A DNA stretch of 64,000 bases from assembly GCA_002104945.1 (NCBI GenBank), contig MCFH01000006.1:1054001-1118000 (forward strand). Reading direction: 5' to 3'. The DNA comes from Piromyces finnis finn (Eukaryota; Fungi; Neocallimastigomycota). Below are positions 680 through 50,666 of this stretch, in pieces (the stretch's first letter is position 1; each line of letters opens with the position of its first letter). A program made the position numbers and the translations under genes. The notes under the pieces are model-generated. The model was not told where the DNA came from and searched no databases. It saw nothing but the letters and a program-made list of their open reading frames with translations.

Positions 680-3600
680 TTACCCTCTTTTTTTCTGGCT
701 TGAATTTTGATTTGAAGGATTTGTTGTTTTTGTCGCTGAATATATATAAGAATATTTGGGATGAGGATTATAATCCTCTTCATCAGAGGTTGATAAAATC
801 TCTTCAATTTCTTTTTCAAGATTATTTGAAGAGATTGAATTTATTTTTTTTAAATTAGTATCATGTAAAATGGAATCTAAATTAAAAGATATAGTAGATG
901 AAGCTGAAAAATTATTATGTTTTTTAGTGTCATTCGATGGTGAAATCCGTTGTTGTTTCGTCATTTTATTTGAGTATGTATTTGAATATTTGTATGGATA
1001 ATGGTGTTGTAATGGTTGCTGACCAGAATTATTGATATAAACATTAGATGATGTAATGGAAGAAGAAAAAATATTACTATTTGAATTTATTTTTTCTGTT
1101 GTTGTTATTGATGATGATGCTGGTGATATACTAATATCTGGTTCATGGTGGTAGTGATAGTAGTTATCAGAAGAATCATATGAATTTTTATTAGGTGATG
1201 AAGTAAACGAAAGTGAAGAAGATTGTGATGAAGAGATCTCGGTATCGAAAAACTGAGAATGATTCGATAATAATAAGGAGGAGGTTTGACTATGTATAGT
1301 ACAGTTTGAATTGGTCTTTTCATTATGTATTGATTTAGTGTTTGTTTTTGATATGATCGGTTCTGTTTTTTCATTTTTTGATAAAAGGGTGGCATTATTA
1401 TACATGGTTTCATTATTGAATTCATTCCTCGGATAATCTTTATTAAATAAAGGATGAAAGGCTTTAGATGGGGTATGACTATGGTCATGCTTTGATTTAT
1501 GAATAAAGTCATTTACTTCTTCATCATGAATTTGATTTTTAATAGGCTTTCGTTGAAATTGTTTTTGATTATTTTTTATATCTCGTTTTTGATGATGATG
1601 ATGACGATGAATTGATGATTGTAATTTCATGGAAGAAATATAAGTAATAGAAGGAATGTCAACTAAAACATCCATTTTTTCATCATCATTATAAATTGTA
1701 TCCATTTCGGTTATGGCTGGTTCTGCTATAATTTCATGCTCTGTTTTAATTTCATTATCAAAATCTAATGAATTTAGGCTAGGAATAAATAAATTTGATG
1801 AAAAAGCTGATGGATGCATCATTTTTTTCACTCTTCTATGAACAAAATGATCTGAATCTTCTGTATTAGATATAGCTTTTTTCTGTTTTTCCTTTTTAGA
1901 TACTAATGGTTCAACGCCTTTTTTTTGATAGGATGATACTTTTTTTTCTGTTACATTTTTAATAGGTAGAATAATATCATTTATTGGCATATCACCAGGA
2001 TTTGTTTTTGACTTTGCCTTATTCAACTTTTCATTTTCACTTTCTTTCTTTGTGTCTCCTCTAGCGTCGCTTTCCTTTTCTTCCATTTGATCAATTTGAT
2101 TAGGTTCTATTTCATTGCTGTAACAACAATGATAATTATAACAACCTTTTCTACTGCTACTACTACTTGGATTATACTCATCTTGAGAGGATATTGCATC
2201 GTTAGTATCTATTGAATCGTTTGATGCTGAATATGGAATTGAAATAATCTTTTTGTCTACCTTACCAAAAGAATCGTTGGTTTTTTTAGGTTTGGTTAAG
2301 GATGTTTCAAATTCAGAAATTTCTTTTATTGTTGGTAATGATTGATGATTTGAATTTCGGATACTTTCATTTATAAATAAATCAATTACAGATGGTCTTG
2401 GCGTGGTTTCTTTGACATCCTTTTCATTCCTGCAGTTTTTATTTGATTCTACGTTCGGTATATGAGTATCATCAAAATTTGATGATAATGATTGGAATGA
2501 TGGTACTATGATTTGAGATGGTATTGATACTTGTTCTTGTTGGGGTGATAAAAGATTATCATCAATACTTTTAGAATTATTCATTAAAGATGGATGTTGA
2601 AATTCCAATGGTTCCTTTTTGTTTGAATTAAAATTTAATGAATCATCAGGTCCATTTGATATATTTATATTATTAAAAGTAATTAAATCATTAACATTGG
2701 ATGAAAATGGAACTGATGATATATAATTTATTTCTGAGTTCCTATGATGGGATTCATTAATTGAATTATTGTCCTTTTGAAGTTTTTCTATTGAAAGTGA
2801 ATTTTGCTTAATGTATCGTTTTGGTTCTCTTATACTACTTCTTTTAGACATTTTATCTCTTTGGGCTTGAATTATAATAACTGATGCTGTGGATGATTCA
2901 GTAGGTAATGAAGATATGGATGGATATTGAATCGTGATAGGTTGATCAGATGATTGACTTATGGATGATGAGAAACTATTTTTACGACATGAATCATTTT
3001 TAAATTTATATATTTTTGATTGCCTCTTTGGAAATTTTATTTTATTTTCATTTGATAGATCAATATCTTGGATATCTTCTGACATATCAGATAATTCATT
3101 AATAACTATATTATCATTAGAAGTAGAGCTTTCATTTTCATTTTGTTGTCGTTGAGTTTCACCATTTGAAGTGAAATACATTTTGGTTGCTTTTGAGTTT
3201 AATTCATTTGGTTTTTTATGATATATTATAGGATAATCTATTGATATGTCATTTTTTTCATTAATATCAATGGAATCAATTTCGGATATTAATGTTTCTA
3301 TCTTATCTATCATTTTATGGGAATGGAGTTTTCCTTGTTGGCAATAAGATTTTTTTGATAATGAACGAGATATTGGTTGTGGCTGTTGTTGTTGACTATT
3401 TTCTTCAAACAAATCAATACTATTGTGATATGGATTAGATAATTGTTCATTGAAAGAATCCTTGCTATTATTCATTATTCTTGAACTATACGATTTTTCT
3501 TTTGGCTTAAATAATATATCACTCTTACGTCCACGTAGAATGGTAATACAGTCATATTCATCATTATTAGTCATAGTAATATCATGATCAGTAAAAGATG

Positions 3601-6356
3601 ATACACTTTTTATTTTCATGCTATTATTATCATTATTATGTTTTTTCGATTTTTCTTCATCATCATTTATTGAACCAGTATGACTTAATTCATTAGTTTT
3701 TAAATCTATGATTTGATTTTCGTCTTGTGTCATTTCAAGTGGTTCTTTTTTTGGTTGAGTTGATTCTATTAATTTAACAGTATCCACAGCTTCAATGCTA
3801 TCTTTATTACTATTCGTAAGTCTGAGATTATCCTTGGGAAGATGATCATATTCAATATTTGTAATGTTTGTGAATGAATTATCTTGTTGTAATTGTATTT
3901 TTGAAGGAATTCTATCAATTTCTTCATCATGTTTTTTAATTTCTGTATATTGTTCTGATTTATCTCTGAGTGTACCTTTTTCTTCTTCTTCATTCTTTTT
4001 ACAACTTTCTTCTAGCTTTCTTATATAAGATATGCAGTTTAATGGCATAGAATTAAAAAGATTTCTATTATATTTACTATAATCAGATCGCTCTTCTGGA
4101 TTATTAGACAATAACTTAGAAATAACATACTTTAATTCGAAAGAAAAATTTTGTATTTGTGGTCGTTTAATAATATCATTGTCTTTTTCTCGTTTATCCA
4201 ATTTCCATTTGATTCTATTTCGATATGGACATTCAAATAGCATACATTCATATAGAGTTGCACCAATACTCCATAAATCGCTATTATAGCTTGCTTCAAC
4301 ACCATTAACTATCTCTGGTGCCATATATTGTAAGGTTCCCACATGTCCTTTATTAACAATAATATTATTTTTGGTATAAATAGCTAATCCAAAATCAACT
4401 ATTTTTAAAACAGGTAAATATTGATAATGAATGAGGGAACGAATATCAATCATATTTTCTTGATTCATATTAACATTATCATTTGTATTTTCAAAAGACT
4501 TATTCGATAGTGAAGAGAAAGATTTCTTCATATACATATCATTGTCTTGCCATCCAATATGAACTTTACTTAATTGTTGATGAAGAGATATAAGACTATT
4601 TTTTTTTTCAAAACTGTTACTTTTATCAATATAATATTTCATTGGAAGAGAAGAACTTGATTGAACAAGCATAATATTTTGAGGTTTGATATCTCTGTGA
4701 ATTATTTTCTTTTTGTGAATGTATTCAATAGCAGATACTAATAATAATAATAATAATTATTTTATTTACATTATAAATAAAATATAAAATAAAAAGAATA
4801 AAAAAAAACAATGAAGACGAAATTTATTAAATATAGAAAAAAATAAAAGATATAAATTATATATATTTCAATAAAAGGAATAAATTAAATAAACCTGATA
4901 AAAATTAAAATTTTACCTAATTGTTTATAAAATATTCTAACTACCACTTCATTTAAACAATTTCCCGGTCCAAGGTATGGATTAGCTCCATTATCTAATA
5001 TCCAATTTTTATTTATTATTCCTTTTTTCATAATATATTCTTTAAGGGTTCCTTGATCACAGTACTCTGTAATGATAAATATTTTATTTTTATCAGCCTT
5101 TATTTTTTTTATGTTTTAATGAGGAATGAACGAAAATTTTTATTTATAAGAAAAAGAAATAATTTAATAAATTTAAAAATATTATTAATTTAATAAAAAA
5201 AATAGAAAATAAAAAGATAATAAGGAAGAAATATAATATAATAATACAATAGGGATATGATGATATATACCCATGAAGTAATGAACTTTTGAATATTTAT
5301 ATGATTTAATTCTCTTAAGAATAAAGCTTCCTTTATCGTCTTTTTATACTTTTTTTCTGATTCGACCGTTAATGAATTTTTATCTTTGGCTATATATATG
5401 ACTTTTAAAACATGTTTTATTGGTAATCCTAATGATTTATTGGCGGGTTTTAATTCATTATTTGATGAAGTTCTTTTGACAGAGGATTCTTTTTCGTTAT
5501 CACAATAATTAACAATTGAATTAGAATTTAACGTCAAATTCAAACTGCTATGACTAAATCCACCACCTTCGAATACATTTTTTTCAGTCACCAAATAAAG
5601 TTGAGCATGTGCCGTACTAACTAATTCTTTCAATATTTTATATTTATATTTTTCAAAAGGAATGAACGTTTCCTCTTTAATATAATTTTTATTAATATAA
5701 ACAGAAATTTTTTTCGGTATTGTAATGATTTTAGTTGTATGGTTTGATTCAGCAAGAGCATTGGTAGTATCATCACTATTAGGTATTTCTGTTATTAAAC
5801 TATTATCATTTATATTTAAATTGTCATTATGAATTAATGCTTTAGTAACATCCTCTTCTTTTTTAATTAAATTTTGTGATTGGTTATTAATCTGATGATT
5901 ATATAGATAACTATTAGAAGCATTGGTATTTTTTTCACTTAACACTATTTCATTTTCATCTTTAAATATTTTTATATTATTTATTATGGCTTCTGTAAAT
6001 TGATTTATACTAATATTTGGATTTTTAATAAGCTCTGAAAATGCTATTTCCAAAGCACTCCTATAATTTTCATATTTATTAAATGATGGTGATGACGATG
6101 GATAGTAACAAGATAAGGATTGGAAACAAATAATATTTCCTGGGGTATTTACTGATAATGAATATTCTCCAAAATTTTCATTATCATGATAATTATAAAG
6201 ATAATTGCTTAAATTAGGAAGGGATATTTTATGTTCATCTAATTGATAACTATCTTTTTTTGAATTTATATCCTCATAATTAAAATAATAATCTAACCAA
6301 ACAGTTAATCTACTTCCTAAAGGAATTAAATTAAATATATTTCCATTTCCATTTAT
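680..6356 (-). CDS. Ser/Thr protein kinase (NEK-like), multi-exon, followed by ~1100-aa low-complexity C-terminal tail; exons approx 6356-5271, 5097-4919, 4737-680
   Basis: Spliced by eye via GT/AG sites: HVLKVIY (beta3 Lys), KEALFLRELNHINIQKF (alphaC), IITEYCDQGTL, IHRDIKPQNIML, LKIVDFG, GTLQYMAPE, DLWSIG. ORF track pieces are 5190-6053 and 680-4672. Confidence 0.88.
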
Positions 6357-31545: not shown

Positions 31546-34500
31546 CTAAAAATTGGTTTTTTTTAAATTGTTTGCACGATAATAATGAATAGCGATGTTC
31601 AATATTAAATTAATAATAATCCATATTGGACTTAACCAAATATATGGGTATAATAATCCAGTAGCTACAGGTAATAATATAGCATGAATTAGTAAAATAT
31701 AAGCAATTGTTGTATATGAATAATTAATAATATATTTCGTTAAATGTAACAATTTGTTAATACATTGAGCATCATGATAAATTGTTGTAATTACTGAAGA
31801 ATCTAATGAAATATCATTTAAAATACCTAAACATAAACTATATCAAGTATAGTTAAAAAAAAAAAAAAAAGAGAGGAAATAATTAATATTAATTAAAAAA
31901 GGAAATAAATAATAAAAATTAAATTATTTCTATGAATAATTACCCAATATCTGCAGCTGAAAAAACATCAGAATCATTAATATTGGTTCCTATATAGGCA
32001 ACCATATTTCTTTTATTTTCATTTGTTCGACTTATTAATTGTTCATTATCACGTTCTTCCGGCGGTTCAACCTTTACTCTTCTTTCATTGTTATTTTTAT
32101 TTATTGAAACGCCTTGGAAATTATTAGTTTCTAATGATTTACGTGATGTGGAAGGAATTGGTGCTATAACATTATAATTTGAAAATACATTTGATGAATT
32201 ATAAGGATTAAATGGATCATAGTGACGACTTTCTTGTTGATACACTTTATATTCGTTTAATTCGCGATCAAAACTTGAATTCGTAAATTTAAAACTCGAA
32301 TTCATATTCTTATTACTTTTAGAATGAAAATCATAATTGGTTTGAAGCCAGGTAATTTTTTCCCTTTTTTCACTTGGAAAAGTATTGTAAAAGCAATGAT
32401 TTTCATCGATACCTATTTGCTTGGCAATACTAACTGTTGATTTTTCATTATCATTGGAAAGTAACCATGGCTCAATATGATATTGCTCCTTTAAACATTG
32501 GATTAATGATTTAGTTCCATCACGAACATTGTCATGAATACTAAGCATACCAACAATTGTTTTGTTAATTGCAACATAAAGAACAGAATAACCATACTCT
32601 GTCCATACTGCAAGACGAGATTGATCAATTGATGATAGGCATTTCTGTTTAATCATCCACTTTTCACAACCAACATAAACATCAATTATATCATTGGAAT
32701 AACATGACCGAATTTTTGCCATAATATTATAACCCTCTGTTTCATGATAATAAAGAACATTCCATGATACCAATGTTTTATCAGGAATCGACATTTCTAC
32801 CTTTTTAATGTAATTCCTAATACATTTGGCATATACATTAGAAGAATAGGATTCAAGAGATTTTAAAATGCCATAAAATGCCTCATCTTTACCATACTGA
32901 CTAAAGTTTTTATCAATCACAACTTCGACAATACTTGGATTACCATTGGTAATTACCTGATCCTTATCAAATACAACAATATCTAATTGACTCAATTTCT
33001 TAAAAGTTAAGGCATCATCTTTAATTAAAATTCCATATTTCATGGCTATCTTTGAAGCTATCGAAATAACAATTGGGAATGTGAATTCAATAGTAAACGG
33101 AAATGCGATAATTATAACACTCAACGAAAAGACTAAACCAAATTCAACTCTATAATGATTTTTTACAGATTCGTCTTTAAAGTATGCGTTATCACTATCA
33201 AAACTACCAAAAGTCCAGACGAGTAACGTAAATATAGAAATCACAAAAATTGCAGGAATTAAATATTTATAAATACAATCAGTAAAAATATGAAATGAGC
33301 TTTTGGAAAGTTGAACATCTTCAATAAAATTAATCATGGAATAAAATGCACAATCATTAGTTGCATCCAAAATTTTTACATAAATTGAAGATTCTATATT
33401 CATTGCACCAGAAACAACACGATCCATTACAGATTTAATAACTGGTTTTGTGTTTCCACTTATCATGGATTCATCTAATTTTGTTTTACCATAGACAATA
33501 GATCCATTATATGGAACACGATTTCCTGGAAGTATTTTAATTATATCACCTTCCTTCAATTCATTAACATCAACAATAGTTTCAATCCATTCTTTTTTCA
33601 ATGATTTCTCATCAATTGTATTACAATTAGAAAGTGTTGGATCAAGAGGAGTTATTAAAACCGCTTTTTTCATTTTTAAATGCATAAACTGTGAAATATT
33701 ATCTATAGTATTTTGTCTCGTGGAAAGTTCTAAAAGTTTACATACAAAATAGCATGTAATGAATAAAGATGACGTTCCGAAATATTCATGATAAACATGA
33801 ACATTTTCATATGTGTTTTTATTTGTGTATAATTGAAGAAGTCGTATAAATATGCAAAGTGTTGAATAAATCCATATAATCCATGATATTAAACTTAAAA
33901 TGACAACACGACTTAAATAATTCCTTTTTTTCTTATTTAAATGTATTGAATCATCTAAATTATTTTTTTGATCATCAGAATATTGTAATTTCGTAAAATT
34001 ATTAACATTTTCGTTTGAATAATGGCATTCACACTTATTAGATTTAATGATTTGATATGTTTTAGTATGGATTTCAGAACCAAAATAAAATTGGACAGGG
34101 AGAGATAAAAGGAAAACTAAAATGCATTCAATATGAATATTTAATCTCAAATACACATTATTGGTAGCATGATTTACCCATTCAAAAAAATAAGGTGTAA
34201 TAAAACTAATAATAGTAAATATACTACACATTCTAAAAAATCTTTCAATTTTTGAATAAACTATAAAGCGTTTATCCATTATATCGCTAGACCTCTTTTC
34301 GATCTTATTTCTTAATTCAATATAATTAATATTTCTATTACTACTATTTGATATTTCTAAATTATCATTACTATTTCCAATATATTCAGTAATAGAAGAG
34401 GATGAATTTAATGAGTTTGCATAATTTGTTGTTAAGAAACAATTAGTATCATCTGAATCAGAATTATAACAGATTTCTGTTTTTTCTCCTTCATCTTGTT

Positions 34501-36034
34501 CTATTGATATTAAAGTATTACTATTTTTACATTTTTCAATAAAGGATGTATCTTGTTTACTAGTATATATATTAAATGGATTATTAAGTACTGATTTTTC
34601 TTCCTCTTTTGTAAGGCAGCGAAAAGAATCAGACATGGTATAAACATCAAAATTATAGGATTTCATTTCATTTATAATATCTTTAATCGTAATTTGATAT
34701 GAATTATAAATTATTGTTAAATATCTATTTTGAAAGTCAAATTTTAATGGATATTTAATTCCCGGAATTTTCAATAATCTAGATTCTATATAGGTTGCTT
34801 CCGATGCTCTATTTAATTTTGGTAATAAAAATGTTATTGAATGTAATAAAATTTTAAGATTATAATCATTATTATCTATATCATTTATTTGCTCTTTGTT
34901 AATTTTTTCCTTATAACTTAATGGTAAAAATTCTGTTTGAATTTTATTTATAGATATATTTATTTTATTTAATATAGTTTTAATGTCATCAAAAATAAAA
35001 CTTTCTACAGATTCATGATACTGGAAAATCATTGAAAAATTATATATTTCTTTACTGGAATAATTGTCCGCAAATATATCATTTATTAATCCGTAGGATG
35101 GTTGTTTTACAAATTGTAAAGAATGAATGTCAAGCTGATCAAATAAATATCGGCAAAAATAACATTTTAACCATTGGATACAACTTTGACATTCCGGATG
35201 ATACATTCCAAAAGTTATACTTTTATCATTAACTTTTGCATTTTTATCATAACTTAATTCAATATATGCACTTTTATTATATGTGTTATTATATTTTGAA
35301 CTAGTTTGTATCATTTCATTATTTTCTTTGTTTCTTGACGAATATATATAATCTTTTATAGCATTATCATTTTTATTACTGCAATCAATTTCCTGATTCT
35401 CATAAGTTGTTGTACTAATTTTCGTATTAGTTTTATTAGCTTGAATTACTTTAATGAAAGGAGAGTGAATAGTTTCCTTAATTTTTAATCCATTTTTTAA
35501 AATTACATTTTTAATTAGTATATAATTTGTAAAATCTGGATTATATTTCACTTTGATTTGATTTGTTAATAAGGATACATGAACACTTGATTCAATTGAT
35601 GGTGATATATAATATAATGGGTTTAATAATGGATAATTATTAATATCACTTATATCATCAAAGGAATTTTCGATTTCTTTTTTAAAAATTTTTTCATTTT
35701 CAAATAAAATAAGATTTCCTTGTTCAATTTTATTATTTATATTGTTGTTGTTATAATGATATTGATATTCAGTAAAATCATCTTCATTTCCTATTCCTGG
35801 AATAGAATATAATTGTTTTTTCAAATATTCTAATTTTTCGTGAGGAAAGCATTTTAATTCATTATTATCAAAATTAAAGGTTACATATTTTATCTTCCAA
35901 ACAGGTCTAATTCCTGAATTATTTTGACTTTTGAAATTATTTAATTCATTTTTATTTTTTTTGTAATTCTTTATTTTGGTATTAAATATGAAATTAAATT
36001 TTGGAACATCATTATGGCATATATGATATTCCAT
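31546..36034 (-). CDS. P1B-1 (Cu-type, CCC2/ATP7-like) P-type ATPase homologue with degenerate catalytic and metal-binding motifs; large exon ~36034-31942 plus terminal exon ~31828-31546
   Basis: Domain order (HMA-like repeats, TM helices, A-domain GDIIKILPG..LDESMISG, M4, P-domain VVFDK, N-domain, YIGTNINDS..AADIG, M5/M6 LPVATGLLYP) matches CopA/CCC2. The 5' start is uncertain. Confidence 0.88.
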
Positions 36035-38224
36035 TTTAAAAAAATCTAAATAAAATTTAATAAAGAAAAATATTAACAACTGTAGCTCAAATTAAATCAA
36101 AAAAAAAATATATAAAAATTATATACCTTTATCCAAATTTCAAATATAATATAATAGTAAACTTGTATAAATAAATGGAAGAACAAAATTAATTAATTAA
36201 AATATTTTTAATATTTATAAATTCCTGTATGGACAATTCTTTTGATTTTTTTATATACATATATAATACTACCACACTAAATTGAATATAAGTGTGTATT
36301 AGTATATATATCAATGAATATAAAAATATATTGATATAATTATTAAAAATCGAAAAAAAAAAAAAAAAAAAGAAAAGAAAAAAAAAAGGGAATAATTTAA
36401 AAATCAGATTTCGAGATTAATAAAACTAATATTCTTCTATTATTGTATATTTTACACTTTATATATATAATTTGCTGAATTTTCTCGAGTATTCTTTTGT
36501 TTGTTTTTTTTTTTTTTTTTTGTTGTTGTTGTTGTTGTTGTTGTTGTTTTCTTTGAATTATTTTTATTATTTTTTATTAGTTATTCTTTAAATTACTAGA
36601 ATTAATTAATTTATAATAATTATATCATATTATACTCATTTAACCTTTATAGTTGTTTTTATTGTTGTTGTTATTATTTTTTTTTTCAATTTTTTTGTAT
36701 TTTATATTTTTAATTATAATTATTATTTTATTTTTATTTCTATTTTTTTTTACTTATTTTAATTTTTTTTAAAGTATATTGTTAAAAATGATATATTTAT
36801 TGATAATTAGTTATTATATTAATTCTTTTATTATTTAAAATAAACTATTTCTACTACTTTTAGTGGTATTATTGTTTTACTTTAATGTTTCATTTTCATA
36901 TTTTAAAAAAAAATGATTTTTATTACTTCTACTTCATATTTTATTGCCAAACTCTCTCTATCTTTCAATTTTTTATATTAAATTTCATTATTTTTTAAAT
37001 ATTTATAAAAAAAAAAGATTAAATATATAAAATTACAATGAATATGTGTTTTTAAAATTGAAAAGAAAGAAAGAAAAAAAAAAAGTAATATAAGTAAAGA
37101 AACTTTAATTTTACTTATAAACTATCTATTAATCTTTAAAGTTTAAGGGCCTTTTTATTTTTTTATATTAGCTAATTAGCAATAAAAATTGAAATATAAC
37201 ATTATAAAATTTCAAATAAATTATTTAATATATTATATTTATTTTTAATTTAAATGTTCATATATTAAATTGCTGCTTTATTATATATTATCTTTGATTC
37301 ACAAATTTGTTTTTTTTAATAATAAATAAGATTTTATTTTAAAAAAAAAAGGTTTATCAATTATAAGTTTATCTTAAACTAATGAAATGAAAAATTTAAA
37401 AAAAAAATAAAAAATTAATACAAAAAAAAATATAAAATTTATAATTTTTTTTTTTTTTTGATAAAAAAAAATTTGATTATCTTTCTAATAATAATAACAT
37501 TTTCTAAAAAAGATTATTTATCCATTAAATAATTTATTCATTCATTTAAATATATAATATTATTATCATTCTTTTTTTTTTTTATTTAATAAAATGATAA
37601 CCTATTTTTATTCATACTTTATGATTTAACAATAATTAATAAACAATATTTTATATTTAAATGATTAATATAATCTAATAATCTACTATTAGTGATTATG
37701 TAAAATAAAAAAAGATTGAAAATAATCCAAAAAATTAAATAATTTTCTTTTTCTTCATCTTTTTTTCTCAAAATCTATTTCGGTTTTTTTTTTTTTAATA
37801 TTCATAATTTTTTTAATTATACTATCTTATAAAGTAAAAGCTCTCTATATTATCATCTTTTTACTTTTTTATCTATCATCTTTTCAAAATTCATTTTATC
37901 TATCATTTAATGTATGGAATTGTAGATAAAAAAAATTTTTTAAAAGAATAAAATTTAACTATTGCCTATAGATAATAATATTATTTATACTATTTATACC
38001 ATGTACATATTTAAGTTGACGTATTAGTATTGTTTGTAAATATATTGTAATGTATTGTAATGTAAATGTATTTAATATTTTAAGAAAATATATAATATTA
38101 TATAACAGTATATTTTTGTTATTGTTGATGTATGTTAGTAATAATTATAGTATCTTTTATTAATTTTGATAATATCTTATTAATTGTAATACAGTAATTA
38201 TAATATTTGTTATTATTAATATAT

Positions 38225-40935: not shown

Positions 40936-43218
40936 ATGCCATCTATTAGATCTGCTCTTGCTCTTCTTGGTGCTACTGCCGTTTTAGCCGCTCCAATGAC
41001 TAAGCGTGCTAGTGATGAATACGCTCAACGTGCTATTGACCACTACAACAAAATTACTGGTAATGGTTCTTACCAATCTGAATACTTCTCTCCAGAAAAT
41101 GTTCCATACCACTCTGTTGAAACTCTTATGGTTGAAGCTCCAGATCACGGTCACGAATCCGTCTCTGAAACCTACTCCTTCTGGGTTTGGTTAGAAGCTG
41201 TTAACGGTAAGCTTACCGGTGATTACTCTGGTGTTGAAACTGCCTGGAGCTACTTAGAAAAGCACTTAATTCCAGACAGCAAGAACCAACCAGGTAACAG
41301 CAAGTACAATCCATCTTCTCCAGCTACTTATGCTCCAGAAGATGATGATATTGAAAACTACCCAGCTAAGCTTGTTTTCCAAGACGGTATTGTTGGTGAA
41401 GATCCAATTGCTAAGGAACTTCAACAAGCCTACGGTAACTGGGATATCTACGCCATGCACTGGATTATTGATGGTGATAACTGGTACGGTTACGGTCAAC
41501 AAGGTGATGGTAAGTCTAAGCCATCCTTCATTAATACTTTCCAACGTGGTCCATCTGAATCTACTTGGAAGACTGTTCCACACCCATGCTGGGAAACCAT
41601 GAAATGGGGTGGTCGTAACGGTTTCTTAGATCTTTTCACTGGTGATAACTCTTACGCTAAGCAATGGAGATACACTGCTGCTCCAGATGCCGATGCTCGT
41701 GCCATTCAAGCCGCTTACTTCGGTTGGTTATGGGCTCAAGAAGATGGTCAAGATCTTTCTTCTGTTGCTTCTAAGGCTGCCAAGCTTGGTGATTACTTAC
41801 GTTACGCTCAATACGATAAATATTTCAAGAAGATCGGTAACTGTGTTGATTACCAAAGATGTTCTGCTGGTCGTGGTAAGAACTCTGCTCACTACCTTAT
41901 CTCCTGGTACTTCGCCTGGGGTGGAGGTTTACAAGGTGACTGGGCCTGGAGAATTGGTTCCTCCCACACTCACACTGGTTACCAATCTCCATTAGCTGCC
42001 TGGATTCTTTCCACTCAACCTGCCTTCAAGCCAAAGTCTTCTAATGGTGCTAAGGATTGGGCTACTTCCATGGACCGTCAATTAGAATTATTCAGATGGT
42101 TACAAACTCCAGAAGGTTGTATTGCTGGTGGTGCCACTAACTCATGGCAAGGTCAATACGCTCAACCATCCAGTGACATTACTACCTTCTATGGTATGTG
42201 GTACGACTGGCAACCAGTTTACCACGACCCACCATCCAACAACTGGACTGGTATGCAAGGTTGGGGTATGGAACGTGTCTGTTCCATGTACTACCTTTCT
42301 GGTAACGAAAAGGCTGGTCTTGTCTGTAAGAACTGGGCTCAATGGGTTAAGGACACTACTCGTGTTAACGGTGGTGAAGTTATCCACGCTACTAACTTAG
42401 GTTGGGATGGTAATCCAGATGAATGGAAGGCCTCTAACTTCAATAAGTCTGGTCTTAACAAATCTCTTCACGGTACTGTTACTTCTGAAGGTCTTGATCT
42501 TGGTTCCATTGCCTCTATTATGAAGGGATTAATGTGGGTTTCTATGAAGGATGGTGATGAAGAAGGTCTTTCTCTTGCTGTTTCTGTCATGGATGCCATT
42601 GAAAACTACAAGGATGATCTTGGTTACGCTGCTGAAGAACAACGTCTTGACTACGAAAAGTTCGGTGGAGAAGTTTACATTCCATCTGGCTGGACTGGTA
42701 AGAATGCTCAAGGTGCTAACCTTCAAAACGGTGTCACTTTCATTGACATTCGTCCAAAGTACAAGGAAGATCCAGACTGGTACCAAGTTGAAGACTTCCT
42801 TAATGGCGGTAACCCACCAACCTTCACTTACCACAGATTCTGGGGTCAAACCGAAATTATGGTTGCCAATGGTCTTATCTCTATTTACGATTTAGGTAAA
42901 TACGGTAAGGGTAACACTGGTGGTAACACTGGTGGTAACACTACCAAGCCAGGTAAGTGTTCTGCTGCTATTACTAGACAAGGTTACAAGTGCTGTTCTA
43001 AGAATTGCCAAGTTGTTTACACTGATGGTGATGGTGACTGGGGTGTTGAAAACGGTCAATGGTGTGGTTGCGGTGGTGCCGCTGAAGTTTGTCCATCTTC
43101 TATTACCTCACAAGGTTATCCATGCTGTTCATCTTGTGGTACCGTCTACTACCAAGATGCTGATGGTGACTGGGGTGTTGAAAACGGTGACTGGTGTGGT
43201 ATGCCAACTGAATGCTAA
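40936..43218 (+). CDS. cel48A: Glycoside hydrolase family 48 processive cellulase with signal peptide, GNTG linker and two C-terminal fungal (CBM10-like) dockerins
   Basis: VPYHSVETLMVEAPDHGHESVSETYS, MHWIIDGDNWYGYG, FINTFQRGPSESTW, QWRYTAAPDADARAIQAAY, SAHYLISWYFAWGG, GGATNSW, YHRFWGQ. Two YxDxDGDWGVENGxWCG dockerins. Intronless, with strongly biased codons. Confidence 0.97.
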   Translation: MPSIRSALALLGATAVLAAPMTKRASDEYAQRAIDHYNKITGNGSYQSEYFSPENVPYHSVETLMVEAPDHGHESVSETYSFWVWLEAVNGKLTGDYSGVETAWSYLEKHLIPDSKNQPGNSKYNPSSPATYAPEDDDIENYPAKLVFQDGIVGEDPIAKELQQAYGNWDIYAMHWIIDGDNWYGYGQQGDGKSKPSFINTFQRGPSESTWKTVPHPCWETMKWGGRNGFLDLFTGDNSYAKQWRYTAAPDADARAIQAAYFGWLWAQEDGQDLSSVASKAAKLGDYLRYAQYDKYFKKIGNCVDYQRCSAGRGKNSAHYLISWYFAWGGGLQGDWAWRIGSSHTHTGYQSPLAAWILSTQPAFKPKSSNGAKDWATSMDRQLELFRWLQTPEGCIAGGATNSWQGQYAQPSSDITTFYGMWYDWQPVYHDPPSNNWTGMQGWGMERVCSMYYLSGNEKAGLVCKNWAQWVKDTTRVNGGEVIHATNLGWDGNPDEWKASNFNKSGLNKSLHGTVTSEGLDLGSIASIMKGLMWVSMKDGDEEGLSLAVSVMDAIENYKDDLGYAAEEQRLDYEKFGGEVYIPSGWTGKNAQGANLQNGVTFIDIRPKYKEDPDWYQVEDFLNGGNPPTFTYHRFWGQTEIMVANGLISIYDLGKYGKGNTGGNTGGNTTKPGKCSAAITRQGYKCCSKNCQVVYTDGDGDWGVENGQWCGCGGAAEVCPSSITSQGYPCCSSCGTVYYQDADGDWGVENGDWCGMPTEC

Positions 43219-46142: not shown

Positions 46143-49100
46143 ATGTCAGTCCTTTATATTAAAGATAAGAATTATATCAGACGTGGTACCCGGTCTTATG
46201 GTATCCCCTTAGATGATATTCGCTCCTTCTTTATCCGTGGTATTCGATCATGGTCAGTAAATATGCTATGGGAAAAACTCGAGGTTATTCTAGAAGATAA
46301 ATTTAATTCAGTTATTAGTGTTAAATATTTTCAGACTTTCAATGATCACTTTTTCTTAGTCAAGGTTCATGGTTCATCGAAAGATTGTATTAAAATCTTA
46401 CACATGTTAAAGAAGAAACTTTCAGTTACCTCAATTTCCTTTTCAGCTCGTAGTAGAAGGAATCACAAATACACTTTTTCCACTCTCAAACGTAAAATTT
46501 TAGTTTCTAATAAACATCAACATTCTATTCAACAATCATTTCAACAATCAGTTCAACAATCTCATCAACAATCCGATCTTCAACTAGATCTTCAACAAGA
46601 TCTTCAACAAGTTTCCAATCATGAAAATATTCCAGATCTACAGCAAACACAATTTCATTCTCAACATTCAACAATTAATTCTAATAGCTCTATCAACTCT
46701 GATAACAGTTCAATAGTTGATAGTTCTTCAGTTTCACAGCCATCTAGTAATAGTTCTACTTATTCCTCTGATGCATCATCCATTAATAACGATGACTTTA
46801 ATAATAATAATAATAGCAACGATTCTTCCTCATCCAACAAGCCTGATAACTTTTCTTTTTGTCTTAGTTGGAACACCAATGGGTGGAATCACGAAAAGAG
46901 AGATAGTATTAGCTATTTCACAGCTATTTTCAAACCATTATTTTTATGTTTCCAAGAAACTGGTAATGGTTCTGGATCGAATACAGATTATCCTTGTCGT
47001 GTTACTTTGCGAAACTATAGACACTTTTTCAAGAAAGCTGACGAATCAGTTCCGGGAATGAGAGGTTTATATTTAGGTTTTCACAATTCATGTCAAGCCT
47101 CACTTGAAAACTTCTCTGGAAAGTATATTATTTCTATTTATACTTTTAGTCTCTGGAATAGATTCAAATGCTCGATTGGTAATGTTTATATGCCTCATAG
47201 TCATCACAACATCTATGTTGATCATGCAAAGTTAGAAGTTCGCTTGTGGTTACAAACTCATTCATCCCATCCATCGATTCTTGTTGGTGATTTTAATATG
47301 TCTAAAGTAAAATTATCCAACTGGTTATCAACTAATGGATTAGGAGATTGGGAAATTCTTCCGCTTAGAGGGTCTACTATCTCTTGGACTCGAGGTGATC
47401 AATCTTCCGACATTGACCATGCTCTTATCAATTCGAAGATGAAAGATCTTATTCACTCAGGATCATTTATAAATAATTTTTATCCTGTATCAGACCATAA
47501 GCCACTTCTTATTAATGGTAAAATTATTCCTATGGAAGATTTTTCTAATGACTTTAATGTTCCTAAGAAAATTCTGAAATGGAATAGATTAAAATGTATT
47601 GAGGAAAAGGAATCTATTCTCAGTCATAATAAATTCCAAATACTTTCAGCAAAATCCAACGATCCTAATGTTTCTACAGATGAACTTTCCAAAGAGTTTA
47701 CTTCAACTGCTTTCTCAATTGCAGACGAGCTCAGTATTACTTCAGCAAATAATGTTATAAAGTCTTCATTTCATATTTCACAACAAATTTTTAATCTTCA
47801 AAAAATCAAAATGAAGTTGTATAAGAGATTTAAAAAAGAAAGAATTTATGATATAGATGAATTTATTAAAAGAATTAAAATCTACCGTAAACTCATTGAT
47901 TACATCCACAAAAGATGTAATGAATTTAGGAAGCAAGAATATCTTCATTGGATTAAAACAGGATGTGAGTATATGAAGAGTCATAATCCTAAGAAGGCCT
48001 GGAAATGGATCAAGAAAACTGCAAAAATTGGAAAAGATTCTTTCTTTATTGCTCAACCAATTAAAAATAAAAATGGAGAATTAGTTGTTGCTACGGAAGA
48101 ACAACTAGAAGTGTGGCATGATCATTTCGAAAAGCTTGCATCAGACCCAAGTGGTGTAAGTCTTGATTTGGAGCATTGGTATGAAGAACCAATGAATAAA
48201 CGTTTTTCACTTCCTATGCTTGATGAGTGGGATATCAACCAAGATATTAGTATTGATGAAGTCAAGTCAGCTATCCTCACTACTCCAAATTATAAAGCAT
48301 CAGGTCCGGATGGTATTCCAATTGAATTTTACAAAGCATTAATTCCATCAAGTAATGATTCTAATAATGCTACAGATAATAATTCTTCTGGTAATACTAC
48401 TTCAGATAATGATGCTCATGGTTTAAATTTTATTCTTAAATTATTCAACCGTATTTGGGATGGAGATTTCCCCAACTCATGGAATGAATCCAGTATTGTT
48501 TCTATTCCTAAGAAGGGAGATTTGACAGATTGTGATAACTATCGAGGTATATCACTTATCAATAATGGTATTAAGTTGATTTCCAAAATTGTCACCACTA
48601 GAATCTCAGAATATGGTCTAAAGAATAATTTCATTAGACCTGAACAATTTGGTTTTCGAAAAAAGGAAGAAAGTATTAGTCTTTTCATTTCAATCCAAGA
48701 AATATGCCGTAGACGTCAATTAGATAATAAAGAGACATATTTGGCCTTTTTAGATCTCAGGAAAGCATACGATTCAGTCCCAATCGGTAATATTCTCCAT
48801 AAATTAGATTGTTTAGGAATCCGAGGTAAGAGTCTACAATTTATCAAAAATTTATATTTAACATCTAAGGCTAATGTCAAATTAGATGGACAATTCTCGA
48901 AATCTTTTGATGTGAAGAAAGGTGTCCGTCAAGGATGCCCTCTTTCTCCTATTCTCTTTAATCTCTTTATTAATGATATATTTAGAGAGTGCGAAGATCT
49001 AGGAGTCAGTTTAGGTGACACTCGATGCTGTGGTGGACTTTTTGCAGATGATATAGTTATTTGTGCTCCAACAAGAGGATGCTTAAAAAAGATGCTTAGA

Positions 49101-50666
49101 AGAGTTAATGAATGGGCATTGTATAATGAAATGGAATTTGGTATCCAGAAATGTTCAACGATGGTGATTCGTCCTGAATCAATAGAAAATCAGAACAAGA
49201 GAGATCCAACATTTTACTTAGCAGGACAACCCATTCCAACTACTGATTGTTATACTTATCTTGGTGTTCCATTTGATAAGAATCTGTCCCTTAAACCAGT
49301 AATTAAAGCTCTTAATAACAAGGTTTTGAAAGGGCTTTTCTCAGTCAGTAAATTCTTAAGAAATCCTAATATTCCTATTCCTTTCAAAAAACTAGTACTT
49401 AACTCACAAGTGATTAGCAGAGTTTCATACTTTGCACCATTACTTGGATCCAACAAAGCTAGGTCTAGGATTGCTCAGAAGCATGTTAACAAAGGAATAC
49501 GATGGGTTGCCGGAGTTCATAAAGCTGTATCGTTTATATCTTTATACTCTATCTCAAAAGATTTGAATATTCCTCCATTGTCAGCCAAATGTGCGTTAGC
49601 TCAGGTTAGATGTTTTAACAAATGGAAAAACTCAAATTGTATTATCTCACACCTTGTCAATTACATTCCTAAATTTAGAAAATACACGTGGTGCAAATCA
49701 AGTAGGACACTTGATAAAAAACTAAAGAAACATGGAGATGTTAAAGCAGTTAAAAACTTTTATTGGAAAGATCTCAAAAGGAATTCAATCAAAGCGCAAT
49801 ATTATGATGATAATAAATTTATTGAAACTAAAGATTTTATTAAATTATGTTATGAATACCCAGAGTTTGCCTATGGCTTCTACTGGCTATTGAAAGCAAG
49901 AAGCGGATACAAGTTGGATGCTAGAGTTGCCAAAGCTGCTAAATTTGTTGATCCAGTTTGTCCTAACTACTGTCCATGTTGCAAGTGTGGAGATCAAAGT
50001 ATTAAACATTGGTTATTAGATTGTCCAACATTTAGAGATATCCGTATTAAACATTATGATTCCATAGTCCAGCTATTAAATTTTTTCAGTCAACGTAATT
50101 CCAATAGTCCTATCAATAATAATGAAATTGATAATATCAGTAGAGATAGCAATAACATTAATAGTAATAGTAACAATAGTAGTAATAACAATAGTAATAG
50201 TAACAATAGTAATAGTAACAATAGTAATAATAACAATAATAGAAATAATAATATTAGTAATGATAGCAATAGTGAAGATAATAATTCTAATTTAGATAGT
50301 AATTTAGTTAATGATAGTAATAGTTCTAATAATCCGGTGAATATTAATGTGTATGATTATTCTAGTGTGTGCAGTGAAATATTTAAATTCCTTCTTGGGG
50401 GAAGAAGTTTTAACAATATTAATTACAATTCAAGGGAATGGAAAGAACTTTGTAAGCGTCAGATTCAATCTGGTACTAACGAAGGAACACCATTCTTGAC
50501 GGTAACCGCGGAACTTCTAACCAAAATCATGCCTTTTGCTATTGGCCAGCAATGGACAATGTTCAAAAGGTTTGAAGCAACATCCAAGAGCGTCAATGCT
50601 GAAGAAACAGTAAGACAGGCCAGGAGGGCCAGCGCAACCAATGGAGATCATAATTTTGTTCCATGA
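46143..50666 (+). CDS. 1507-aa retrotransposon polyprotein: RRM-like N-terminus, APE-type endonuclease, reverse transcriptase, CCHC zinc knuckle, Asn-rich insert
   Basis: APE: SWNTNG, FQET, GDFN, SDIDH, SDHKP. RT: ASGPDG, YRGISL, QFGFR, FLDLRKAYDSV, GVRQGCPLSPILFNLFIND, LFADD, YTYLG. C-terminal CPCCKCGDQSIKHWLLDC. Confidence 0.95.
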   Translation: MSVLYIKDKNYIRRGTRSYGIPLDDIRSFFIRGIRSWSVNMLWEKLEVILEDKFNSVISVKYFQTFNDHFFLVKVHGSSKDCIKILHMLKKKLSVTSISFSARSRRNHKYTFSTLKRKILVSNKHQHSIQQSFQQSVQQSHQQSDLQLDLQQDLQQVSNHENIPDLQQTQFHSQHSTINSNSSINSDNSSIVDSSSVSQPSSNSSTYSSDASSINNDDFNNNNNSNDSSSSNKPDNFSFCLSWNTNGWNHEKRDSISYFTAIFKPLFLCFQETGNGSGSNTDYPCRVTLRNYRHFFKKADESVPGMRGLYLGFHNSCQASLENFSGKYIISIYTFSLWNRFKCSIGNVYMPHSHHNIYVDHAKLEVRLWLQTHSSHPSILVGDFNMSKVKLSNWLSTNGLGDWEILPLRGSTISWTRGDQSSDIDHALINSKMKDLIHSGSFINNFYPVSDHKPLLINGKIIPMEDFSNDFNVPKKILKWNRLKCIEEKESILSHNKFQILSAKSNDPNVSTDELSKEFTSTAFSIADELSITSANNVIKSSFHISQQIFNLQKIKMKLYKRFKKERIYDIDEFIKRIKIYRKLIDYIHKRCNEFRKQEYLHWIKTGCEYMKSHNPKKAWKWIKKTAKIGKDSFFIAQPIKNKNGELVVATEEQLEVWHDHFEKLASDPSGVSLDLEHWYEEPMNKRFSLPMLDEWDINQDISIDEVKSAILTTPNYKASGPDGIPIEFYKALIPSSNDSNNATDNNSSGNTTSDNDAHGLNFILKLFNRIWDGDFPNSWNESSIVSIPKKGDLTDCDNYRGISLINNGIKLISKIVTTRISEYGLKNNFIRPEQFGFRKKEESISLFISIQEICRRRQLDNKETYLAFLDLRKAYDSVPIGNILHKLDCLGIRGKSLQFIKNLYLTSKANVKLDGQFSKSFDVKKGVRQGCPLSPILFNLFINDIFRECEDLGVSLGDTRCCGGLFADDIVICAPTRGCLKKMLRRVNEWALYNEMEFGIQKCSTMVIRPESIENQNKRDPTFYLAGQPIPTTDCYTYLGVPFDKNLSLKPVIKALNNKVLKGLFSVSKFLRNPNIPIPFKKLVLNSQVISRVSYFAPLLGSNKARSRIAQKHVNKGIRWVAGVHKAVSFISLYSISKDLNIPPLSAKCALAQVRCFNKWKNSNCIISHLVNYIPKFRKYTWCKSSRTLDKKLKKHGDVKAVKNFYWKDLKRNSIKAQYYDDNKFIETKDFIKLCYEYPEFAYGFYWLLKARSGYKLDARVAKAAKFVDPVCPNYCPCCKCGDQSIKHWLLDCPTFRDIRIKHYDSIVQLLNFFSQRNSNSPINNNEIDNISRDSNNINSNSNNSSNNNSNSNNSNSNNSNNNNNRNNNISNDSNSEDNNSNLDSNLVNDSNSSNNPVNINVYDYSSVCSEIFKFLLGGRSFNNINYNSREWKELCKRQIQSGTNEGTPFLTVTAELLTKIMPFAIGQQWTMFKRFEATSKSVNAEETVRQARRASATNGDHNFVP

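Follow-up and report, generated by a model that had tools for sequence, protein, structure and literature searches.

A pseudo-P1B-ATPase under purifying selection in anaerobic gut fungi

What is a gene for that keeps the architecture of a copper pump and has replaced the motifs by which such pumps work? The question is raised by a locus on the minus strand of a 64,000-nucleotide stretch of the Piromyces finnis genome (GenBank assembly GCA_002104945.1, contig MCFH01000006.1, positions 1,054,001 to 1,118,000; this whole stretch is called the window below, and coordinates refer to it). P-type ATPases are among the best-understood enzymes, and their hallmark motifs are treated as invariant. A first-pass annotation of the window took the product of this gene for a catalytically dead P-type ATPase that had been retained for a new role. 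Our analysis supports that proposal through orthologues in other species, ratios of nonsynonymous to synonymous substitution rates (dN/dS) of 0.16-0.33, spliced mRNA of the Anaeromyces robustus orthologue and conservation of the dead motifs themselves. The protein is a genuine, selected pseudo-P-type ATPase. As for its function, we hold it probable on balance that it belongs to a pseudo-P1B-ATPase family of anaerobic gut fungi which does not pump and most likely acts as a metal-responsive scaffold or sensor.

An intact gene for a protein of the P1B-ATPase fold

The P. finnis gene consists of two exons (36034..31944 and 31837..31546) that together encode 1460 aa, arranged as follows:

31944..36034, minus strand: exon 1, running from the ATG at 36034 through 1363 whole codons and two bases of the split Gly1364 codon; it encodes the N-terminal HMA-like region, helices MA to M4, and the actuator (A), phosphorylation (P) and nucleotide-binding (N) domains
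31838..31943, minus strand: intron of 106 nt, with GT at 31943-31942 and AG at 31839-31838, placed after ADIG (...SAADIG)
31546..31837, minus strand: exon 2, encoding the end of the P domain and helices M5 and M6, with the stop codon TAG at 31546-31548

The gene had been described as correctly spliced, and the spliced product is indeed 100% identical to a P. finnis database protein (P0001, 1460 aa, BCR36DRAFT_409615). This entry is labelled only 'hypothetical protein', and its relatives in public records are likewise 'hypothetical' or named after a domain. The open reading frame (ORF) had been put at 1379 codons, a length which stands when the frame (36079..31940) is counted from an upstream TTG; the first ATG lies at 36034, and exon 1 counted from there has 1364 codons. 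G+C content is 10-16% in intergenic DNA and 20-30% within the gene, according to window composition. The stored P0001 sequence was used for all whole-protein analyses, and dN/dS was calculated exon by exon.

Annotation with Pfam identified the domains E1-E2_ATPase (2.6e-26) and Hydrolase (HAD; 4.3e-12), and HMA at 0.0014, which is under threshold. The best matches in a sequence search of the PDB were Cu(I) pumps, namely OsHMA4 of rice (2.6e-40), human ATP7B (~1e-35) and LpCopA of Legionella (7.6e-27). The core of the protein (residues 545-1460) was modelled with AlphaFold2 (AF2) from a 30-sequence alignment, giving a mean predicted local distance difference test score (pLDDT) of 71 and a predicted template modelling score (pTM) of 0.65. 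The model contains eight long helices in P1B order, a beta-rich A domain, and P and N domains; its M4 helix breaks exactly at the retained Pro, and two insertions, one of ~40 aa after MB and one of ~105 aa in the P domain, are of low confidence. Structural comparison of the core model with Foldseek placed CopA (4bbj, 1.5e-35), ATP7B and HMA4 on top, before Zn/Cd pumps and KdpB. By homology and predicted fold, the protein is a member of the P-type ATPase superfamily and of its P1B subfamily.

The residues that define this fold had been reported as kept, and an alignment of dead and canonical proteins bears this out: the Gly of TGES, the M4 Pro, the last Thr of DKTGTLT and the Ser of SEHP are invariant in both sets, as are the P-domain Lys and the Gly and final Asn-Asp of GDGxND.

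Catalytic and copper-ligand motifs are replaced throughout the family

The P. finnis core was then aligned with 22 canonical Cu-ATPases and compared hallmark by hallmark. All six substitutions read at first pass (at TGES, CPC, DKTGTLT, SEHP, TGDN and GDGIND) were confirmed against these pumps, and the positions given for the Asp codon, SGNT, FPF and GTNIND proved exact when computed from the ATG:

33449..33460, minus strand: A domain, SGNT for TGES, with Asn in place of the dephosphorylating Glu; family pattern [SNC]GNT, of which G-N-T is invariant
33095..33103, minus strand: M4, FPF for CPC, the universal Pro alone being retained; family pattern [FCY]P[FY]
32948..32968, minus strand: P domain, DKDQVIT for DKTGTLT, with the Asp codon at 32966-32968; family pattern [DN]K[DEQ]QVIT
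32834..32845, minus strand: N domain, SSNV for SEHP, with both adenine-binding residues, Glu and His, gone; family pattern S[ST]N[VI]
32447..32458, minus strand: P domain, SNDN for TGDN, with Ser and Asp invariant in the family; family pattern S-x-D-[NS]
31973..31990, minus strand: P domain, GTNIND for GDGIND, with the first Mg-binding Asp gone; family pattern G[TN][ND]IND, most orthologues having GNDIND

The N-domain GxG is likewise changed, to GYN in P. finnis and G-Y-[NS] in the family. The M5 YN and M6 MxxSS ligands, which had been called unrecognisable, have no counterpart in the family alignment, where Ile and Leu stand at the M5/M6 ligand positions. What the P domain does retain across the family is the conserved Lys, one Asp and the final Asn-Asp.

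The phosphorylated Asp had been described as kept, which is true of P. finnis and turned out to be peculiar to the Piromyces lineage. A GAT codon is found at the nucleophile position only in P. finnis and its closest relative, P0002. The residue is Asn (codon AAT) in A. robustus, Neocallimastix, P0003, P0004, P0005, P0006 and the fragment P0050, that is, in seven of nine lineages, and TGT is lost in all. Because the nucleophile site is mostly occupied by Asn, the function of the family as a whole would have to proceed without an aspartyl-phosphate.

None of the signatures by which a functional P-type ATPase is recognised (the Asp of DKTGT, TGE(S), SEHP/GxG and TGDN/GDGxND) could be identified as such, and neither could the set of M4 CPC, M5 YN and M6 MxxSS ligands that characterises P1B-1 Cu(I)-ATPases. 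An E1P/E2P cycle should not be possible once the Asp nucleophile, the Glu of TGES and the Glu and His of the N domain are gone, and with CPC, YN and MxxSS also missing, the membrane should hold no high-affinity Cu(I) site. We infer that the protein forms no phosphoenzyme and pumps no copper.

Motif loss was also seen outside this family. An unrelated P1B homologue from a Logan assembly (P0048, 777 aa) carries NGSI for TGES, DLNGT for DKTGT and TGAPGE for TGDN with CPC intact, and may represent another independent decay of motifs in P1B proteins. A 718-aa protein from the European Nucleotide Archive (ENA), P0154, is the sole other protein without an exact DKTGT among the best 150 matches of our family profile (see below).

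The dead motifs are conserved in intact, constrained orthologues, at least one of them transcribed

A word search retrieved orthologues from A. robustus, Neocallimastix lanati and N. 'constans', together with six proteins from transcript or metagenome data. Their cores are 63-77% identical to that of P. finnis, and the next matches are canonical pumps at no more than 27%. Orthologues that are full-length or nearly so are present in at least eight further anaerobic-fungal lineages, and the replacement motifs are near-invariant across the family alignments, which include Anaeromyces, Neocallimastix and five lineages represented by transcripts or metagenomes only. Two of the checks suggested at first pass, for orthologues and for conservation of the substituted motifs, thus came out in favour of the proposal, and the phylum named there, Neocallimastigomycota, was the right one.

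Selection was estimated by the Nei-Gojobori method on codon alignments with bootstrap intervals. The dN/dS is 0.156 against the closest relative (bootstrap 95% confidence interval 0.125-0.198) and 0.27-0.33 against other clades (0.33 for A. robustus), with intervals far below the value near 1 that would have pointed to a decaying gene. Broken down by region, dN/dS is 0.12-0.18 in the P and N domains, 0.14-0.25 in the transmembrane (TM)/A region, 0.10-0.24 in M5-M6 (exon 2) and 0.43-0.49 in the N-terminal 560 residues. The strongest constraint is on the P/N pair of domains, whose catalytic residues have been lost. The proportion of synonymous differences (pS) is ~0.5, near saturation at AT-biased third positions, and these ratios are therefore upper bounds. 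Core identity within the family is 63-69% between clades and 63-78% overall, which is comparable with the genome-wide amino-acid identity of 65.3-76.6% between anaerobic-fungal clades (bioRxiv 10.1101/2022.07.04.498725).

Expression could be assessed in relatives. The A. robustus locus (L001) has three introns, and contigs from five public sequencing runs (Logan) carry an uninterrupted ORF of 1467 codons at 99-100% identity; as all three genomic introns have been removed from them, we take these contigs to be spliced mRNA. The expression that had been called for is thereby documented in A. robustus. Further runs and Joint Genome Institute (JGI) samples contain contigs of two other lineages with uninterrupted full-length ORFs, judged on the contigs alone.

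The last intron occupies the same codon position in P. finnis, A. robustus, Neocallimastix and L011, a metagenome contig with 18% GC from the closest relative. Contig L011 has two extra introns in the N-terminal half (3214-3343 and ~3820-3950) that are absent from P. finnis, and the A. robustus orthologue has its three; for this reason we conclude that introns of the gene are actively gained or lost, the conserved last one excepted. We also considered that the split ORFs of L011 might be frameshifts and rejected this, since they correspond to the extra introns.

In this family, loss of catalytic residues thus coincides with purifying selection and with orthologues across species, the combination by which a pseudoenzyme is recognised.

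Origin of the family and the search for a canonical paralogue

We performed an exhaustive hidden Markov model (HMM) search with the family profile against 1.84 billion cluster representatives. Family members scored 1876, 1601 and 549 bits, canonical pumps followed from 258 bits, and nothing lay between. The third member, P0050 (549 bits), is a divergent 508-aa fragment that carries the same dead motifs. Within the libraries searched, the family is restricted to anaerobic fungi. The named canonical pumps at the top of the list come from Chytridiomycota (Nowakowskiella, Gorgonomyces, Gaertneriomyces, Polychytrium and Phlyctochytrium), Mucoromycota (Umbelopsis and Apophysomyces), Acrasis and Galdieria.

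In a maximum-likelihood tree, the family falls inside the eukaryotic clade, separated from bacteria with Shimodaira-Hasegawa-like approximate likelihood ratio test (SH-aLRT) support of 97-99. Its stem measures 4.1 substitutions per site and its crown tip branches 0.07-0.15, against ~1-1.2 substitutions per site in canonical fungal lineages over a comparable span. It is strongly supported that the stem evolved about 3-4 times faster than the canonical fungal copies. The simplest reading is vertical descent from a fungal CCC2/ATP7, with a burst of change on the stem and renewed constraint thereafter.

No canonical Cu-ATPase of an anaerobic fungus was found among the best 150 matches of the family profile. 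An amino-acid composition pointing to an AT-rich genome was seen in three of these matches only: P0050, one canonical pump of a non-fungal eukaryote and one bacterial-type CopA. Similarly, the best 120 matches of a chytrid CCC2 query included no anaerobic-fungal protein, though several such proteomes are in the database; the list runs through more than 35 chytrid proteins and then AT-rich dictyostelids, Heimdallarchaeota, plants and oomycetes, down to 44% identity. From these searches it is likely that anaerobic fungi lack a canonical CCC2, and the pseudo-P1B-ATPase is probably the only CCC2-lineage protein left in them. A membrane-proteome survey of three anaerobic fungi lists zinc, iron and magnesium transporters and leaves copper unmentioned (PMC5168858), and the literature on anaerobic-fungal transporters that we searched mentions no copper pump.

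Several candidates for a canonical paralogue were examined and rejected. P0011 is a bacterial-type CopA with a single HMA domain; P0202/P0086, a canonical pump, is encoded on a eukaryotic contig of 24% GC and has best named relatives that are no more than 47% identical and non-fungal; P0055 and P0125 lie in compact, bacterial-style contexts. An ENA metagenome contig of 24% GC (L016:140-3700) encodes a canonical Cu-ATPase of 1186 aa from an AT-rich eukaryote, with the nearest named relative at 47%. This protein has two CxxC HMA domains and a Cys-rich C-terminal tail, and its neighbours include Aquarius and an intron-split amino-acid transporter.

Three HMA-like domains, one surviving CxxC and a new Cys-Glu-Cys

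The N-terminal 560 residues were modelled separately with AF2 (mean pLDDT 46.5). Within this model, three beta-alpha-beta-beta-alpha-beta blocks have a local pLDDT of 65-78, and a short cysteine motif follows in the core:

35465..35899, minus strand: HMA-like domain 1 (aa 46-190), beta-alpha...beta-beta-alpha-beta, split by an insert of ~70 aa; no metal-binding Cys
34937..35275, minus strand: HMA-like domain 2 (aa 254-366), the sole repeat that retains CxxC
34640..34846, minus strand: HMA-like domain 3 (aa 397-465), with Arg and Glu at the GMTCxxC Cys positions (KLNRASEA, in which RASE is aligned)
34025..34033, minus strand: Cys-Glu-Cys (C668-E669-C670), cytosolic, immediately following the MB platform helix

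In the PDB, the N-terminal profile matches nothing but Cu-ATPase HMA domains, and these weakly (E 0.27); Foldseek with the N-terminal model gives weak matches to ferredoxin-fold and HMA domains, which we take as a hint only.

The HMA-like repeats had been said to lack CxxC. This holds for domains 1 and 3, the latter having RASE at the CxxC position, and does not hold for domain 2. The GMYHPECQSC noted earlier as a remnant maps to residues 276-285, and C282 and C285 (35180-35191) sit at the junction of loop and helix 1 of domain 2, the place they have in canonical HMA domains, with a loop two residues longer than that of the canonical GMxCxxC. All five lineages for which the N terminus is covered have the motif, the Neocallimastix genome included, and it reads GMYHPECQSC, GICHPDCKNC, GLCNPLCKNC, GICNPECDNC and, in the Neocallimastix genome, GICHSDCNDC.

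The NCBI models of two Neocallimastix proteins, P0008 and P0010, omit ~87 residues with the CxxC domain (L015:2001-7628, N. lanati genome). A loss of HMA-like domain 2 by an 87-aa deletion was considered and rejected, as the genome encodes the region in frame. The omission stems from a mis-called intron and is an artefact of annotation.

The Cys-Glu-Cys belongs to an N-x-C-E-C motif after MB that is specific to the family and invariant across its alignment. A further family-specific element lies in the P domain:

32015..32329, minus strand: disordered P-domain insertion (aa 1236-1340, ~105 aa), between the PxxK lysine and the GDGxND position

This insertion has a pLDDT below 50 and a dN/dS of 0.3-1.0, and it is absent from canonical pumps. 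Short motifs within it, such as F-K-x-T-N-x-S-F-D-R-E-L and D-P-F-N-P, are conserved across genera and look like protein-interaction motifs.

What the protein may do

In the reading that we favour, the protein would be a non-pumping and most likely metal-responsive scaffold or sensor. There is strong support for descent of the family from a Cu(I) pump of the eukaryotic, fungal CCC2/ATP7 type. Along the stem of the phylum, every residue on which the Post-Albers cycle depends was lost (Asp and TGT, the TGES Glu, the ATP-binding Glu, His and Gly, and one Mg-binding Asp), together with all Cu(I) ligands in the membrane (CPC, YN and MxxSS). Afterwards the gene stayed intact, spliced and expressed, with purifying selection acting on it, and the eight-helix P1B core, its A, P and N domains and the three N-terminal HMA-like domains are retained in the predicted fold. 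Input might come through the CxxC of HMA-like domain 2 and the newly acquired Cys-Glu-Cys at the cytosolic platform, and output might pass through the conserved cytosolic head and the disordered insertion with its short motifs. In real Cu pumps, chaperones and metal-binding domains dock at the platform where the Cys-Glu-Cys and the CxxC domain sit. Their location at this docking place suggests that binding of metal or of a chaperone is still read and passed to the cytosolic head. The scaffold or sensor role itself is speculative.

Several points weigh against this reading. The loss of activity and the two putative metal sites, CxxC and Cys-Glu-Cys, are deduced from sequence alone, and the N-terminal model is of low confidence at its mean pLDDT of 46.5. 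In P. finnis and its closest relative the nucleophile site is Asp, and the D-K-D-Q-V in which it lies, taken by itself, resembles the DxDx[TV] of HAD phosphatases. The transcript evidence comes from relatives of P. finnis. The absence of a paralogue rests on the best-ranked matches (150 and 120) and not on a scan of genome assemblies, and the exact sister group is not settled by the tree, owing to the long branch and to composition effects of which the program warned.

A bolder version of the same idea, possible in our view and doubtful, is that no working Cu(I)-ATPase remains in anaerobic gut fungi, and that their single CCC2/ATP7 gene turned into a non-pumping, metal-responsive receptor or trafficking scaffold when the ancestor became an obligate anaerobe. 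If true, the family would be the first case of a P-type ATPase turned into a stand-alone 'transceptor', sensing via the CxxC HMA domain and the new Cys-Glu-Cys site.

Pseudoenzymes often regulate active paralogues, and the protein might accordingly be a regulatory or structural partner of an active canonical Cu(I)-ATPase, for example a dead heterodimer subunit or a decoy for an Atx1-type chaperone. The surviving CxxC HMA domain could accept chaperone-bound Cu(I) or compete for it. We consider this unlikely, as the check for a canonical CCC2 that had been suggested at first pass returned no anaerobic-fungal Cu-ATPase among the best 150 profile matches or the best 120 chytrid CCC2 matches, a result which weakens the option of an active partner.

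Quite unlikely, too, is a passive channel or carrier that would leak a metal or another solute along the former ion path. The eight helices, the Pro kink in M4 and the constraint on transmembrane segments noted above (the TM/A region and M5-M6) would suit such a function, but where the ligands were, bulky hydrophobic residues now stand ([FCY]P[FY] in M4, Ile and Leu in M5/M6) and not the polar ones that would line a pore, and there is no known precedent among P1B proteins.

An enzyme of altered chemistry, such as a HAD-type phosphatase in Piromyces with D-K-D-Q-V as motif I, seems very improbable. The match to DxDx[TV] is accompanied by a retained motif II Ser, motif III Lys and final Asn-Asp of motif IV; against this, the nucleophile is Asn in seven of the nine lineages, the residue at +2 is Gln in one, and P. 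finnis is without the first acidic residue of motif IV (GTNIND). The prevalence of Asn and the loss in motif IV therefore indicate a family-wide function that would be independent of HAD phosphatase chemistry.

A decaying pseudogene or annotation artefact, which the loss of every catalytic motif and the lack of any functional annotation in public databases might suggest, is effectively excluded by the sequence data, given a frame open for 1460 codons at 20-30% GC, intact orthologues in at least eight further lineages, dN/dS intervals well under 1, a conserved intron position and spliced transcripts.

Relation to known systems

The closest functional proteins are the CCC2, ATP7A/ATP7B and HMA5-RAN1 pumps. 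With these the family shares homology over the whole core, the eight-helix topology with MA and MB, the A, P and N folds, multiple N-terminal domains of HMA fold and the Pro kink in M4, the nearest sequences being those of chytrids and mucoromycetes. It differs from them in that all catalytic and membrane metal motifs are replaced, two of three HMA-like domains have no Cys, an insertion of ~105 aa in the P domain is disordered, another of ~40 aa after MB carries the Cys-Glu-Cys, and the stem is 4.1 substitutions per site long. The proper label is accordingly pseudo-P1B-ATPase, not copper pump: the protein is P1B by descent and fold, and by its motifs would fail as a functional P-type ATPase.

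We found no description of a conserved dead P1B-ATPase in the literature searched, and a 2023 review of open questions on P-type ATPases makes no mention of inactive, degenerate or non-functional members. The nearest published analogue is the P4-ATPase module of alveolate guanylate cyclases (P4GC; Cryptosporidium, Plasmodium GC-beta), where in some lineages the Asp of DKTGT and the Glu of the A domain are gone; this degenerate flippase module is retained and thought to have a supporting, non-pumping role (PMC13466520). The likeness lies in a degenerate P-type ATPase module that is kept without pumping. The P4 module is fused to an output cyclase, whereas the protein described here is a stand-alone P1B in which all motifs are lost phylum-wide.

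The transceptors of yeast, Snf3/Rgt2 and Ssy1, have transporter folds that no longer transport and are kept as receptors, with added cytosolic extensions. The parallel is one of concept only: their folds (MFS and APC) are unrelated, and a signalling role of the present family would be conjectural.

A dead P1B-ATPase under selection throughout a phylum would show that the pump scaffold is useful apart from pumping, and would serve structural and trafficking work on ATP7A and ATP7B as a natural 'all-motifs-off' control. A further question is how obligately anaerobic fungi handle copper if they lack the canonical Golgi copper pump, as our searches suggest. In practical terms, annotation by domain alone could lead metabolic and transporter inventories to count these genes as copper pumps.

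Neighbouring genes in the window

Other genes in the window are typical of anaerobic fungi. The GH48 cellulase gene at 40936-43218 on the plus strand is intact and includes two CBM10 dockerin modules (Pfam 5.6e-262 and 1.5e-28); its product is a typical cellulosome component of these organisms. Genes for eIF3a and a kinase are also present. At 46143-50666 on the plus strand lies an ORF of 1507 aa that contains a reverse-transcriptase domain (RVT_1, 1.2e-35) and belongs to a long interspersed nuclear element (LINE).

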